From: Amoeboradix gromovi X-113
Lineage: Eukaryota > Fungi > Sanchytriomycota
DNA: 6,197 nucleotides
Assembly (NCBI GenBank): GCA_018985225.1
Contig: JADGIF010000602.1
Span: 1-6,197, forward strand
Reading direction: 5' to 3'
Positions 1 to 6,197 of this stretch are shown here, in pieces. A program made the translations under genes and the position numbers. Under the pieces are notes generated by a model. It did not search any database. It was not told where the DNA came from and saw only the letters and a list, made by a program, of their open reading frames with translations. Numbering within the stretch: position 1 is the first letter of the stretch; every line of letters starts with the position of its first letter.

Positions 1-223
1 TTGGGGAATGCGATGAAGTATTTACTAGTCGATTGCCTACCTCTGCTGAGGTCTTACCAATATCGGTTGGAGACTGTACATTACAAGAAAATGAATGTCA
101 AGTACTTGAGATTATGCAGCCTACTAGATCATGCCTAAAAGTAGTTGAAGCGTGAGAGTCACTCGTTTGTTGGTCTAATTGAGGAAATTCTTGCTTTTCT
201 AAAAACTAAGACCTTTATTGAGG
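1..223 (+). repeat. Left arm of a long inverted repeat, truncated by the window start
   Basis: Base-by-base comparison: position i pairs with 6131-i for i=1..223. There are 5 mismatches (20, 65, 99, 157, 171) and no indels. Similarity stops after ...CTAAGACCTTTATTGAGG at 223. Confidence 0.98.
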
Positions 224-272
224 GGTTTGTGATCATAGGTGCTTTTAAAATTTTCAAATTTCACTCCTTGAA

Positions 273-1606
273 ATGAATATATCTGTCAACACCTCTCATG
301 TACAGAGAATTTCTGCTCATTCACACATAAAAGATTTGAAAACAATGGTTGGACAGGAAACAGCAAGAGAAGCAGCGCAGCTGGCACTAGAATTAATTAA
401 GGAACAGAAATTAGCAGGAAGATCAATATTATTGGCGGGACCAGTTGGTAGTGGTAAAACCGCGATTGCACTCGGAATGTCAAGGGAACTAGGACAAGTG
501 CCATTTGTCGATGTTAGTGCATCTCAGGTGTATAGTAGTGAATGTAAAAAAACTGAACAACTTACTATGTTGATGAGACAAGCGATCGGGTTAAAAATAA
601 GGGAAATAAAAGAAGTTTATGAAGGCCAAGTAATGCAATATGAGGTTGTTGAATCAGAGGACCCATTGACTGGCTATACAAAAACAATTTCAAATGTTTT
701 ATTAACATTGAAGACTCAAAAAGGATCCAAGCAGATGAAACTGGACCCATCTATTTATGAGCAGTTACAGCGCGAGCGCGTTGTTGTTGGGGACGTAATT
801 TATGTGGAAGCAAACAGTGGTATTGTCAAAAGAGTTGGGCGTAGTGATCAGTTTGCTAATGAATATGATTTGGAAGCGGAGGAATATGTGCCATTGCCTA
901 AGGGTGAAGTTCATAAAAAGAAGGAGGTTGTACAGCAAGTGACACTGCACGATCTAGACATGAGCAATGCGAATCCTAACATTAAAAGTGAACTGTTGAC
1001 TCGGAAAAAAACCGAAATAACTGAGAAGTTGAGGAATGAAATTAATAAAGTGGTGAACAAATACATTGATCAAGGTATTGCGGAGCTCCTTCCAGGTGTA
1101 TTATTTATTGATGAATGTCACATGTATTTCATGATTTATTTAGGTTGGATATAGAATGCTTTGCATTCCTAAATAAGGCATTAGAGAGTCCTATTGCACC
1201 TATAATGGTGTTTGCTACAAACAGAGGAATGGCTACTGTGCGTGGAACCGATATGACTAGTCCACATGGCATACCTACTGATTTCTTGGATAGATTGCTA
1301 ATTATCAAAACCATTCCTTTGAACATGAACGAAATTAAACAAATTTTGCTGATTAGAGCAAAGACCGAAAGCATTACGCTTAAAGATGAAGACTTGAATA
1401 AACTAAGTGAGATCGGGGTCAAGACATCATTGAGATATGCTACACAACTACTAACTCCACTGGTAATGATGAGAGGTGTTGATGGTGTTGATGCTGAATT
1501 TCAAGACGCGATGAATCCTGTAACTGTTCAAGAGGTGACTGAACTATTTATTGATGCAAAGACTAGTGCGCTACAGTTGGAAAAAGAAAACGGATATATT
1601 TGTTAA
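273..1606 (+). CDS. RUVBL1: RuvB-like 1 (pontin/Rvb1/TIP49a) AAA+ ATPase; join(273..1123,1144..1606), 437 aa
   Basis: HSHIK and VGQ motifs, Walker [14 protein letters not shown]1-type segments [20 protein letters not shown] and [37 protein letters not shown], then [21 protein letters not shown] and SLRYA. ORFs 273..1154 and 1115..1606 join into DECHMLDIECF once a 20-nt intron is removed. Confidence 0.97.
1124..1143 (+). other. 20-nt GT-AG spliceosomal intron in RUVBL1
   Basis: Sequence GTATTTCATGATTTATTTAG. Removing it recreates the Met codon (AT|G) and restores the family pattern DExHMLDIECF in frame. Confidence 0.93.
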
Positions 1607-1610
1607 TAAA
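1605..1610 (+). terminator. Putative polyadenylation signal AATAAA overlapping the RUVBL1 stop (TAA TAA)
   Basis: TGT TAA TAAA at 1601..1610 places a canonical hexamer across the stop codon. The sequence is AT-rich, so a chance match is possible. Confidence 0.5.
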
Positions 1611-2420
1611 ATTTCCTGTTTTACATTAAATGCATTGGATTTTGCTCACTCACTGCTGTCCACCTCTAACGCACAATCAGATGCTTACCTACTAACTATA
1701 TTACTGTATTGCCCATCTTGTTTAACCTCAAACTTCATAACATTTGAATACTTTTTCTTTAGGCAAACCAAAACACGCTTAAGTACATAACCATTTACAT
1801 CGCGGTTACTTATATTTTTCTAATGGCATACAAACAAGGTATTTTCTTTTCTCGTAACAGCAAATGGTCCGAATCATCTAAGGTAAATTATGTCAATCTA
1901 AAGGCATTATATAGCGATATAAAATAAATTATTTTGCACTCAAAAACTGGTCTAGAATGAAATTATCTTCTTAAGAAAAGAGCAAGGCATTACTAGAATA
2001 TAATGAAACATTTTCTAGTCATTGTGCAACATATGCTTGAAATTTATGCACAAGTGTTCAATTTTGCCTCACTGATGTGAAAGCATTAGCTTTGATTGCA
2101 GTGGAACATTTGCCATTGTAAGCTTTTCCGTGGAAAATCCTGAATTTTAAGGAAAACACCCAGCTTCAAATGTGATTATCTATTGCAGATATTGGTGCCA
2201 ATTGTTCAAATTTCATTTATTGTTACGAAGATCATTAAGACATCACTTTAGTCTTAACATAATTATCGAGATAATCATGTCTTGAAATAGAACTTACCCA
2301 AGTTGTCTTTGCTATATACCAGTGCAATCCCAGAGTGATAGAAGAACTTAACATTTAAATTAGCCGCCTTGGCTAGTAAAAAGGGATATTTGTTGAAACA
2401 AGTCATATATCACCAATTGA

Positions 2421-3920
2421 ATGTCCCGATCTAGGAATGATATATTTTTGCAGCCTCCTATCAAAGTATACCCTACAACAATAGAAGCAGAATCAGTAGA
2501 AGTTAAGGATAAAGTTATTATAGCACAACCAGTAGAAAAACCTAAAAGAAGTGAAATTCGTAAAAGAGCAGAAGCTTTGATAGAGCGCAGCAGTAAACCC
2601 ATAGGACTGCTTGATACAGATAGATCTGTTAGTCCTATATCGCCCAGAAACAGATCAAAGTCTTCCAGCAATGTTCAACAATTTGTTAGTTTTGATCAGA
2701 TCTCTAAGTTTAGCGCTAACCCAATTCAAGAGTCTCTCGATCTAGTATACCTTCCGATTAAAAAGAACCTTTTGGGTGAAGGCAGACATGCTAATGTTTA
2801 TAGCGGATATTTGAGGTTTAATAAAACTGTTAATAACAACTTGATTCAAGGTCCAGAGTTGCAATGCGCTGTAAAAGTATTTAACAATGAACCTGATTCT
2901 GAAAATGGAGGCTTAATGGAGGCTTACTGTCTCGACATATTAAAGCACCACCACAACATTATCCAATTGTATGGGTTTATGGAATACAAGGATACTCCTG
3001 GTCAAGGAACCAAGTATATAGAAATAAACCTTGAAGAGATGCGCAATATCAATCCAGATGTATTTATGAATCATTGCAAAGTGTTTGATACAGAATTACT
3101 TTACGAAATACCAGACGAGACTTATTTTATTGACTTCAGCCACAAGAAACATAGACTGCTGGTTATCGAATATGCCAAATGTGGTACTTTATGGTCCTTA
3201 TGTCAAAAAACACCAAGATTGATTCAAAAAAGGTTGTTTTTGCGATGGGCAAAGGAGTTAGCTAGTGCTCTTATTTTGATTCAGGAAAAGAATATAATAC
3301 ATCACGATATCAAGCCTGGTAACGTATTACTCGGTGAGTTCAATGTTACGAAATTGAGTGATTTTGGTAATTCTATTCTATGTACACCCCACTGCTGTAA
3401 AATAATTAACGACAAATTTCACTTGCCTATTACAGCAAGTAGAGGCAGAGGTACGACCGTATATCAAGCACCAGAACTATTCAGTAAGGACACTACTGTT
3501 TACGATAATTCCATTGACATGTACTCTTTCGGTGCTGCATTATGGGCTACAGGTATATTAGGCAAGGAACCGTGGGGCAAAATACAGAACGTTGCTATGC
3601 TTCACCAGCTGATTCAACGCGGATTTCTGCTAAATGAACTGAATTGGCCACCTGAGATGCTGCACTCAGAGTTGCAAGACTGTGAAATATCTGCTGTATT
3701 TCCTGACAAAATAAACATTAAGGATGCCAAAGGTATATATAATCCATATAATGGTAGAGTTTTAAGGTTTTTAAACGGAGAAGTAGTGGACGTCTGGATT
3801 TATGAACTACTTAGAGACTGTCTGAGCCCTAGGATTGAAGAGAGGCCTACCCCCAAAGAGTTTTTGTATCGAATAAAATTGAATGATGGCGGGTTAGATG
3901 CCACTGATTTCTTCCTATAA
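2421..3920 (+). CDS. Eukaryotic protein kinase, Ser/Thr-type, non-RD (HHD), 499 aa, with a Ser/Pro/Arg-rich N-terminal extension
   Basis: G-loop LGEGRHANVY, CAVK (Lys152), alphaC Glu in GLME, hinge LVIEY, catalytic loop HHDIKPGN, DFG at 314, GTTVYQAPE, DMYSFG and subdomain XI CLSPRIEERPT. I do not recognise the subfamily. Confidence 0.95.
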   Translation: MSRSRNDIFLQPPIKVYPTTIEAESVEVKDKVIIAQPVEKPKRSEIRKRAEALIERSSKPIGLLDTDRSVSPISPRNRSKSSSNVQQFVSFDQISKFSANPIQESLDLVYLPIKKNLLGEGRHANVYSGYLRFNKTVNNNLIQGPELQCAVKVFNNEPDSENGGLMEAYCLDILKHHHNIIQLYGFMEYKDTPGQGTKYIEINLEEMRNINPDVFMNHCKVFDTELLYEIPDETYFIDFSHKKHRLLVIEYAKCGTLWSLCQKTPRLIQKRLFLRWAKELASALILIQEKNIIHHDIKPGNVLLGEFNVTKLSDFGNSILCTPHCCKIINDKFHLPITASRGRGTTVYQAPELFSKDTTVYDNSIDMYSFGAALWATGILGKEPWGKIQNVAMLHQLIQRGFLLNELNWPPEMLHSELQDCEISAVFPDKINIKDAKGIYNPYNGRVLRFLNGEVVDVWIYELLRDCLSPRIEERPTPKEFLYRIKLNDGGLDATDFFL

Positions 3921-3955
3921 ATGTAAAACAATTTAATAAATAGTTTATTTACATC
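3921..3955. terminator. 35-bp convergent intergenic region with an AATAAA on each strand
   Basis: AATAAA on + at 3935..3940 and on - at 3944..3949 (TTTATT on +), between the kinase stop (3918..3920) and the HECT stop (3956..3958). Confidence 0.6.
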
Positions 3956-5738
3956 TTAATGGAGACTAAATTGTGAGCATTCGCTTATGGCAAACAACAA
4001 TTTCTTCTTTAGTTTGTCTCTGTTGCTATAATGATGGATACACAACTCATGAAAACCTAAATTAAATTTTATTACATGTGTGAGCAATTGGTAAATGTTC
4101 ACTATCGAGACCAGATATGGAAACTCGAAAGTAAAAACCACGTTTATCGTAATCCTTCAAATTACAGAATCTAGCTGAGCATATTTTATCACATCCCGTG
4201 GTAAATCTAAGAAATCTCTTTTTTTGCTCTATGGTAAATTCATTTAGCAGAATATCCCAGAAGTCTTGAATAAATTTTTGAAGCGGGTACTTTGGATTCA
4301 TCTGTTTAATATTGTACATGGAATAATCAAAGATGCAAAAATCTCTCAAAGGAGTTAAGTCGAACTTCTCGTCGCCTTGTATAATCAGTTTTAGTTCCAA
4401 GCTAGAAAATAAATTATTTACATATCTACGAGACGGTAATATTTGCCAAAAACTTTTTAAGAATGCCTTGAAACCTTCAGGATTCATTGAGTAAAGCAGT
4501 GATTGTTTGTAGGCTTCTATATATTCCTCTACGTTGTGCTTGCTCAAGTAAATCTCATGTCCGTTCTTAACCAAGGGATAACAATGAGAGTGATCTTTAT
4601 TGCTGCTAGGAAGATTTTTGTAGTTTCTACAAAAAGACATGCATCCGAAAATAGAGTCGAAATTTGGATTGTTTTTGCAGGACAATAGTTGCTTTAATGA
4701 TTTCATTTCCTGCGGAAATAGTTTTGTATAGTCAGAGTCTGTAATTTTTAAACCTAGTACAAGTTTAAAGAACTGCTCTGGCAAACTAGTGTTCAGCACA
4801 GTGCCATTAAAGACACTCAGTCCAAATATGACGCCCATTAGTTCCATGTTGTGTACATCCGCAGATTCAGATATCCAATCGGATTCTATACAGAATGGTG
4901 CTAAATAATCACATACCAAAGTGGACCACTCTCTTACCATTCCGCCAGCATCTATACCTTCTTCGTTGACAAATTCAATTCTTATTTTCCGTCCCAATTT
5001 AACTCTCTTAATTTCCCTTCTTGAGTCACTAATAAATGACTCACGATGTATAGTTAAGCTTTGAGGTGAATAAAACTTGATGTTTTTTGTGTTGTCAGTC
5101 TCAAACACTAAATACCGAAATTTGAGACTGGTTGGCAAGATATAAGGAAAGTCCAGGATGTTAAATTTCTTCTTTCTATGATTGTAGTAGTCTCTTTTTA
5201 CATTTAAATACATCTCCAACATTGTACAAGTAAAGGACTCTATGGGTATTTTAATACCGTTTTGTAAGTTTATCAAATAGAATTGATTTAACGATAAAAT
5301 CGCACCCTGAATTTGCCATGACGATTCTTTCATTCTGGTACACATCTGGTTTATATATTTAACCAGGAACTGGATGTATTCTTTAAGATATACCTTTGGA
5401 ATGTAAACAGAATTAGGTAATGATGCTCTTCCAAATATATTTAGTATTCTAGGTACCACGTTTATATTGGATACAGATTTATAACTAATGTAATGAAAGT
5501 ACAGTAAATAATCGTAAAACGACTTGCTCTCTAAATTATTTTGAAATAAGAAATTTACCTGAGCCACTCTATAAAATGCAAGCATATCTCCAAAGTTATA
5601 CACAAAATTAACAAACGTAGTTGATTGATATGATTCACATGTATGACATTTTTCTTCGATCTTTAAATTGTTATTACACACACGGCAGAAACCATATTTA
5701 TTTGAATTTCTCAAGCATTTGAAAAATATCAAACACAT
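3956..5738 (-). CDS. HECT-domain E3 ubiquitin ligase, resembling the UBE3A/HECTD2/Hul4 group; complement(join(3956..4056,4076..5738)), 587 aa
   Basis: ILDFPYIL, LTIHRE, RIEFVNEEGIDAGGMVREW, FWDIL, QKKRFLRFTTGCDK and the spliced active site LPIAHTCFHEL, followed by KLKKKLLFAI and a Phe at -4 from the C-terminus (FSLH*). The start codon is less certain than the gene body. Confidence 0.95.
4057..4075 (-). other. 19-nt GT-AG spliceosomal intron splitting the HECT catalytic Cys codon
   Basis: Minus-strand sequence GTAATAAAATTTAATTTAG. Removal gives T|GT (Cys555) and joins ORF 4062..5738 to the last 32 aa of the 3956..4141 frame, completing the HECT C-lobe. The unspliced frame stops at a TAA inside the intron. 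Confidence 0.94.
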
Positions 5739-5907
5739 TTCGATTGACCTATGTTACGCTTTCAAAAAATTAAAAGATGGTTCATTAGCCTCATATGAGG
5801 ATAATTAAAGGATTGAGATTATAAACAATTTCGACATTTTATTTTGAAATCGAATTAGGGAAAGAGATAAATGCTGAGCATGCAACATTAAGGATATACC
5901 CTAGTCA

Positions 5908-6130
5908 CCTCAATAAAGGTCTTAGTTTTTAGAAAAGCAAGAATTTCCTCAATTAGACCCACAAACGAGTGACCCTCACGCTTCAACTACTTTTAGGCAT
6001 GATCTAGTAGGCTGCATAATCTCAAGTACTTAACATTCATTTTCTTGTAATGTACAGTCTCCAACTGATATTGGTAAGACCTCAGCAGAGGTAGGCAATC
6101 GACTAGTAAACACTTCATCGCATTCCCCAA
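5908..6130 (-). repeat. Right arm of the long inverted repeat; probably continues to 6197, but the left counterpart of that part lies outside the window
   Basis: Reverse complement of 1..223 at 218/223 identity. It begins CCTCAATAAAGGTCTTAG at 5908 on the + strand. Confidence 0.98.
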
Positions 6131-6197
6131 CGTCTTGCGTTTTCCTTGGACAACAGTTCTGTTTACATCATGTTTGAGTGTAGAGGAGTCTGCTCTA

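Follow-up and report, generated by a model that had tools for sequence, protein, structure and literature searches.

Ends of an Amoeboradix gromovi contig are probably two oppositely oriented relics of a Fanzor/TnpB-derived mini-element

The window, that is, the whole 6,197-nt stretch of Amoeboradix gromovi X-113 DNA analysed here (contig JADGIF010000602.1), begins and ends in the arms of an inverted repeat. We conclude that its ends are very probably tails of a Fanzor/TnpB-derived non-autonomous element that inserted in two separate events and in opposite orientations. The RUVBL1, protein kinase, and HECT genes between them are ordinary chromosomal genes and not cargo.

Results

Geometry of the inverted repeat

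A repeat search of the window returned arms at positions 1-223 and 5908-6130, which are 223 nt long, 98% complementary, and separated by 5684 nt. Alignment placed five mismatches between the arms at arm positions 20, 65, 99, 157, and 171 (four transitions and one transversion) and gave a common inner terminus of both arms, ...TTATTGAGG, confirming the original prediction of an inverted repeat with five substitutions and a shared inner end. Judging from this alignment, matching arms with a common inner base cannot have arisen by chance. The length first given as 'at least 223 bp' also held, and for the right arm it is in fact at least 290 bp: the arm matched contig C835 at 1905-2195 (291 bp, 96.6% identity) up to the final base of the window, exceeding the repeat as first described by the 67 bp that run to the contig end. 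Since this match runs on to the window end, the value of 223 bp reflects where the contig begins and not the length of the element. The contig ends truncate the arms at unequal positions of the repeat (68 and 1).

The left arm (1..223, plus strand) is the portion of a Fanzor/TnpB-derived relic nearest its right end and corresponded in an nhmmer search to positions 469-610 of the profile of the F family described below (E = 2.6e-7). Its right end lies at 223, 49 bp upstream of the RUVBL1 start codon, and its outer part has been removed by the contig start. The right arm (5908..6197, minus strand), identified by the repeat search, the C835 match, and nhmmer, is another copy of this relic. The right end of this copy lies at 5908, 169 bp upstream of the HECT start codon (5738), and the copy extends to the last contig base.

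Enclosed genes

The RUVBL1 (TIP49) gene occupies 273..1606 on the plus strand in two exons (273-1123 and 1144-1606), with a 20-nt GT..AG intron at 1124-1143 read from the sequence. Its product contained the Pfam domains TIP49 (E = 2e-107) and TIP49_C, and among PDB entries it matched RuvB-like 1 (1.5e-105) far better than RuvB-like 2 (1e-53). The second gene (2421..3920, plus strand) encodes a protein kinase of 499 aa (Pfam Pkinase, E = 6e-29), and the third (4062..5738, minus strand) encodes a HECT-domain ubiquitin ligase of 558 aa (Pfam HECT, E = 9e-40). The assembly contains the core (230-5900) only once. The earlier statement that no transposase or integrase is enclosed was correct for intact genes, since Pfam recognised only TIP49/RUVBL1, kinase, and HECT products, but it missed a decayed relic of the same superfamily in the RUVBL1-kinase spacer (1814..2157, plus strand). 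This is an older, heavily decayed copy of the ~612-bp Fanzor-derived mini-element: with the nhmmer F profile, 2027-2157 matched F positions 467-594 (E = 2.1e-10), and weaker colinear pieces were found at 1973-2021 and 1814-1906.

A third copy on contig C835

A third copy, ~97% identical, is internal to the 6635-bp contig C835 at 1905-2195, where it lies between two ordinary genes, an RPN7/PCI gene and an ion-channel gene (Pfam). It is restricted to a spacer of ~400 bp, which the relic takes up entirely, ending 12 bp upstream of a start codon. The sublineage thus has three copies in the assembly, 96.5-98% identical, each of which fills a gene spacer or adjoins one, and one of them is contig-internal, so that the repeat is not confined to termini as the mini-chromosome idea had expected. 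In all three the right end points toward a start codon, at a distance of 12-169 bp. The arms differ from each other at five sites and from the C835 copy at six and eight, which bears out the earlier view that the mismatches reflect two real copies and not a fold-back. The longest exact stretches common to the copies are 57 and 95 bp.

A search with C835:1500-1975, made for the missing outer parts of the arms and for matches outside the repeat, found no other contig in the assembly. A 30-nt word of the repeat had no match in metagenome contigs, and exact-protein look-ups of HECT and RUVBL1 found none in other assemblies. Rfam (E<=1) and ARAGORN searches of the window contig and C835 returned zero RNA genes. 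We also considered a small protein gene in the repeat, as a 41-codon ORF is kept in all three copies; four of the six variable sites fall at third positions (p ~0.1). The idea was abandoned because this bias is non-significant and the ancestral nuclease was read in another frame.

Homology of the repeat to the F family

A sequence model built from the repeat alone gave 136 matches in the genome at E<=1 (1103 candidates), many of which stop at model position 290. In the nhmmer search with the F profile, the C835 copy scored E = 2.5e-9 and the window arms 2.6e-7 and 2.6e-6. Local alignment of C835:1798-2194 with the F-family consensus gave 71.5% identity over 375 columns, colinear and with conserved blocks. 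At the right-end boundary the sublineage reads ...ATTGAGG and the F family ...AACGAGG[AG], agreeing within 2 nt; the common inner end of the arms coincides with the right end of the F-family element. The F-family left end (CAGCTCGATTG..., first ~160 bp) is absent from the C835 copy, in which homology begins at F-family position ~110-161, right after the stop codon of the neighbouring gene. The frame of the sublineage that corresponds to the TnpB/Fanzor TNB remnant, 63 aa long, had no Pfam match and aligned with the F-family ORF across just 23 residues (CKQ..EC.E.FTS). As far as sequence comparison can tell, the nuclease remnant of the sublineage is decayed past recognition at the protein level.

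The parent F family

The F family is a mini-element of ~612 bp with hundreds of copies (>150 of them strong) in which no more than the 3' end of a Fanzor/TnpB gene survives. Its relic ORF of 144 aa encodes a Cas12f1-like/TnpB TNB domain (Pfam PF07282, E = 1.2e-19), and the nuclease ORF stops no more than 8 nt short of the right end. Longer copies include the RuvC (OrfB_IS605) part, and a single 671-aa nuclease ORF is still open, on contig C542. The genome has 12 resolvase-type matches, one of which overlaps the 5' part of this 671-aa ORF in a different frame. No terminal inverted repeats (TIRs) or target-site duplications (TSDs) were evident at the ends of 30 F-family copies. RNAalifold on 17 right ends gave an unconvincing consensus fold (-0.13 kcal/mol, 7 pairs only), and a hairpin seen in F-family copies is deleted in the three-copy sublineage. 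Of 37 F-family right ends, 23 were followed by an ORF of >=100 aa on their own strand and 14 by one on the other strand, a non-significant bias.

Discussion

Probable assembly breaks in two dispersed relics

The arrangement of the window can be explained as follows. The parent would have been a Fanzor/TnpB-carrying transposon of the IS607/IS605 style, without terminal inverted repeats or target duplication, from which a small non-autonomous element would have kept the transposon's right end and, in decayed form, the 3' end of its nuclease gene. The right end of the element would then account for the abrupt inner limit of the inverted repeat. Short-read assembly would have halted inside both copies flanking the RUVBL1-kinase-HECT block, so that the contig only seems capped by terminal inverted repeats. 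With the two arms as tails of separate dead elements, the three enclosed genes are a slice of ordinary fungal chromosome. The A. gromovi assembly was made from MDA-amplified DNA with 2x100 reads, SPAdes in single-cell mode, and heavy filtering (PMC8371127). An assembly break at these copies is plausible with k=55, and the contig ends presumably reflect such breaks. C835 itself is capped on both sides by stubs of another repeat, a highly abundant MITE, and the same is true of many further contigs, which indicates that inward-facing repeat stubs at contig ends are routine in this assembly. That MITE is ~515 bp long, TIR-bearing, and present in ~800-1000 copies, whereas the window stubs belong to a three-copy sublineage of a TIR-less ~612-bp family.

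Of the three options in the original prediction, a contig broken at two close, oppositely oriented copies of a dispersed element is thus the one that stands, on the strength of the C835-internal copy, the hundreds-strong family, and the unequal truncation of the arms; the mini-chromosome and the gene-carrying element do not. Some observations fit less easily with assembly breaks in two relics. The sublineage has only three copies, whose longest exact shared stretches are no more than 57 and 95 bp. No contig with the outer parts of either arm was found in the assembly. The C835 copy is without the left end (~160 bp), one of the two ends needed for transposition.

Alternative explanations

Two of the three copies lie merely 5.7 kb apart, which is improbable under random insertion, so that either local hopping or a local inverted duplication is needed. 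In the latter case a larger segment would have been duplicated by recombination or replication error, and the arms would form its inner margins, with C835 as source or third duplicate. The inverted orientation and closeness of this pair would suit such an event, as would the slightly smaller number of differences between the arms than to C835 and the outer extent of both arms beyond the contig. However, all three copies end at one base, the same base at which a hundreds-strong element family has its right end, and this pattern is typical of an element end and not of a duplication breakpoint. The C835 copy is moreover held within its spacer, and no other contig matches outside the repeat. We consider a segmental duplication quite unlikely and infer that the copies arose by transposition, possibly by local hopping. 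An artefact, in which an MDA fold-back chimera or a mis-join generated one arm, is highly improbable: MDA creates inverted chimeras and was used for A. gromovi, but folding back would yield an identical sequence, whereas the arms differ from each other and from C835 and are attached to distinct unique gene flanks.

A composite or Pack-type unit, or an invertible segment, would use the inverted copies to mobilise or flip the three-gene block. Inverted repeats of >=223 bp and 98% identity suffice as substrates for homologous recombination, and serine-recombinase genes are present in the genome. Yet the core is single-copy, the sole defined element end points inward, the copies are dead relics without a nuclease reading frame, and Pfam found no recombinase in or adjoining the block; lacking positive support, this option is very unlikely. 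The chance that the contig is a few-gene linear mini-chromosome capped by shared terminal inverted repeats is close to negligible, although repeats face inward at both ends and the contig opens with TTGGGG. The repeat is internal on C835, where TTGGGG is preceded by more repeat, and the arms are cut at unequal positions and are homologous to hundreds of interstitial elements. The opening TTGGGG was rejected as telomeric, being internal repeat sequence in the other two copies. No telomere arrays were found at either window end; a (TTAGGG)4 search returned none anywhere in the assembly and so gave no reference for the genuine chromosome ends of this fungus. The mini-chromosome failed on every feature tested (telomeres, common terminus, terminus-confined repeat).

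A function for the relics is also unlikely, if a little less remote: as 98%-identical copies they might act as a switch flipping the RUVBL1-kinase-HECT block, or outward transcription inherited from the guide-RNA end of the element might give adjacent genes a promoter or 5' UTR, a reading prompted by the three right ends that all face a nearby start codon.

Comparison with known systems

We compared the F family with Fanzor2/IS607-type elements, TnpB-only IS200/IS605-like elements, and their non-autonomous derivatives (Bao & Jurka 2013, PMC3627910; Yoon et al. 2023, PMC10711439; Jiang et al. 2023, PMC10530073). Like these, it keeps a C-terminal TNB domain, has no TIRs or evident TSDs, has its nuclease ORF reaching close to the right end, and occurs alongside resolvase-type genes and an open 671-aa nuclease ORF. 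The parent nuclease may be either Fanzor2 or Fanzor1. Unlike these systems, the sublineage no longer has the coding motifs for the zinc finger and RuvC-III, nor a 16-nt stretch that can form a hairpin, and its single complete copy, on C835, has no recognisable family left end. The window resembles short-read contigs broken in dispersed repeats, in which inward-facing inverted stubs enclose ordinary genes. Its likeness to ciliate gene-sized macronuclear chromosomes or TIR mini-chromosomes is superficial (few genes between inverted ends, TTGGGG at one end): telomere arrays are missing from the window, the repeat occupies an interstitial site elsewhere, and the genes of this genome are fungus-like, use the standard code, and contain 20-nt introns.

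These results also serve as a correction, because inverted end stubs in a fragmented, repeat-rich short-read assembly are not to be equated with mini-chromosomes or gene-carrying transposons. The arms record a small burst, recent to judge by 2-3.5% divergence, of a strongly decayed Fanzor-tail element and fit the picture of a 10.5-Mb fungal genome with gene spacers full of Fanzor-tail relics.

Inverted repeat of C881 and its third copy

A repeat search of the window found arms at 1-223 and 5908-6130 that were 98% complementary, with 5684 nt between them. When aligned directly, the two arms shared their inner boundary, ...TTATTGAGG, and differed at five positions (four transitions and one transversion), confirming the inverted repeat, five substitutions and shared inner end of the original prediction. 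The enclosed genes also matched their description: RUVBL1 (273-1606; Pfam TIP49, 2e-107), a protein kinase gene (2421-3920) and a HECT ligase gene on the minus strand (5738-4062). The RUVBL1 product matched RuvB-like 1 in the PDB at 1.5e-105 and RuvB-like 2 at about 1e-53. Its gene contains a 20-nt GT..AG intron (1124-1143) directly after the Walker B (DEVH-type) codons.

The assembly searched comprised 10.55 Mb in 1319 contigs, and the window is one entire contig, C881. Arm 1-223 as query found exactly three close copies, namely both arms and C835:1972-2194 (97%) on another contig. The C835 copy is interstitial: it follows the stop codon of an RPN7/PCI-domain gene, and 12 bp beyond it an ion-transport gene has its ATG. 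Window 5907-6197 matched C835:2195-1905 as a single 291-bp BLAST hit (96.6%) and the last 98 window bases aligned in the expected register, so the right arm reaches the final base of the contig; this tail had been placed outside the repeat. The left arm is truncated by the contig start at another repeat position (column 68 versus column 1 in the alignment of copies). TTGGGG, which opens the window, is ordinary internal sequence in the other two copies.

Fanzor/TnpB-derived element F

R1, a covariance model of the three close copies that used sequence only, gave 136 matches at E<=1 out of 1103 first-look candidates, spread over the assembly, and many ended at model position 290, the sharp inner boundary of the repeat. 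Once aligned, the best matches fell within a ~612-bp element, F, with left end CAGCTCGATTGTTTTCTTGAATAAATC... and right end ...GGACTTTTAACGAGGAG. No terminal inverted repeat (TIR) or evident target duplication was seen in 30 delimited F copies. F contains a relic ORF of 144 codons that stops 8 nt short of the right end and matches PF07282 (Cas12f1-like/TnpB TNB zinc-ribbon domain; 1.2e-19). A six-frame search with this ORF gave 151 matches from 1300 candidates, the best 150 all with E <1e-43, and the upstream extension of longer copies was the RuvC (OrfB_IS605) part. A still-open 671-aa ORF on C542 (locus L088, C542:1390-4788; locus positions 84-2099, minus strand), with HTH_OrfB_IS605 and Cas12f1-like TNB domains, is possibly an intact Fanzor/TnpB gene. 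Twelve resolvase-type (IS607 TnpA-like) matches were found in the assembly; one of them, in L088 (1501-1899, minus strand, with 210 open codons), overlaps the 5' third of the 671-aa ORF in a different frame, an arrangement suggestive of an IS607-like pair of tnpA and tnpB whose frames overlap. Given the TNB ORF, the RuvC-bearing longer copies, the open 671-aa ORF, the resolvases and the lack of a TIR, we conclude that F is an internally deleted Fanzor/TnpB transposon in TIR-less IS605/IS607 style. Transposons of this style were described by Bao & Jurka (PMC3627910).

Relation of the repeat to F

In nhmmer searches, a profile made from eight full-length F copies matched C835:1957-2194 (profile 320-610, E 2.5e-9), C835:1839-1913 (profile 110-183, E 5e-4) and both window arms (E 2.6e-7 and 2.6e-6), the arm matches ending at profile 610. 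In local alignment, the C835 copy was colinear with the F consensus up to 2194, beginning at 1798, the base immediately past the stop codon of the upstream gene (71.5% identity, 375 columns, 97 gap columns). Because of these matches and this colinearity, the three-copy repeat is an F-like relic, diverged and about 400 bp long, which takes up the entire C835 spacer, and its inner boundary is the transposon right end. The zinc-finger and RuvC-III codons are gone, protein-level alignment with the F ORF was limited to CKQ..EC.E.FTS, and a Pfam search of the repeat's protein frame gave no match. The hairpin-forming 16-nt stretch of F copies is missing, RNAalifold of the right ends, run to look for a guide-RNA scaffold, gave essentially no consensus structure, and Rfam and tRNA scans found no known RNA genes in the repeat.

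All three copies retain an intact ORF of 41 codons that begins with ATG (MKYLLVDCLP...; window 13-138; window 5993-6118, minus strand; C835 locus L006 1984-2109). Of the differences within it, two are synonymous and two non-synonymous. It lies in a different frame from the ancestral nuclease and is probably fortuitous.

Origin of the two arms

The three copies differ from one another at 5-8 positions and have distinct unique flanks, which rules out a fold-back artefact and upholds the view that the arms are real copies. A mini-chromosome capped by terminal repeats was unsupported, since the interstitial C835 copy, the unequal cuts of the arms and the internal TTGGGG remove all defining features of such a terminus. 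A composite or invertible element carrying the three-gene block found no support either: the 5.7-kb core is single-copy in the assembly, the repeat copies are dead and no recombinase lies near the block. The proposal that we judge correct was a contig broken at two nearby, oppositely oriented copies of a dispersed element, with three copies present and one internal on C835. A local inverted duplication might also have produced the arms, as two of the three copies are only 5.7 kb apart and the outer flanks lie beyond the contig; we consider this improbable, because the shared boundary falls at a known element end, which favors insertion. The two arms would thus be insertions of the element, possibly via local hopping.

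Contig ends in the assembly

The published A. gromovi assembly (10.5 Mb, 36% GC) was built with SPAdes in single-cell mode from 2x100-bp reads of MDA-amplified sporangia, with contigs heavily filtered from 48.7 to 10.5 Mb (PMC8371127). Contig ends within repeats are the rule in the assembly searched here. C835 is bounded at start and end by inward-facing stubs (L006 1-62 and 6573-6623) of a MITE family different from F (~515 bp, ~31-bp TIRs, sharp end ...GATGTCCCACATGTA). Stubs of this very abundant TIR-MITE lie within about 20-500 bp of the ends of many contigs (loci L010-L038; 716 candidates), which makes it a leading cause of contig breaks. On C985 (loci L021 and L022), an identical run of 12 bases and then an F left end come after each of two TIR-MITE ends, at 4331-4404 (+) and 23473-23546 (-). 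These pairs, inverted and about 19 kb apart, may stem from inverted duplication on a larger scale, or the MITE-F junction may be a recurrent one.

For C881, the left arm shares an exact block of 57 bp with the right arm and one of 95 bp with C835. Blocks of this length can tangle a k=55 graph and are the putative cause of the break; the 95-bp block starts at the left end of the contig. No other contig of the assembly contained the outer parts of either arm, perhaps owing to filtering.

Repeat copies upstream of genes

All three copies lie upstream of a gene start and are directed toward it, at distances of 49, 169 and 12 bp. The ORF next to an F-family right end was co-oriented in 23 of 37 cases and opposed in the other 14, a difference that was not significant, and we treat the upstream placement as a consequence of the compact genome. 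On C835, the whole RPN7/PCI stop-to-ion-transport ATG spacer (L006 1798-2207) is element relic. The relic fills it to 12 bp before the ATG, so the 5' UTR of the ion-transport gene must lie inside transposon-derived sequence, as its promoter probably does. The three-copy repeat is a new small sublineage of Fanzor/TnpB-derived mini-transposons, which are already known as a kind.
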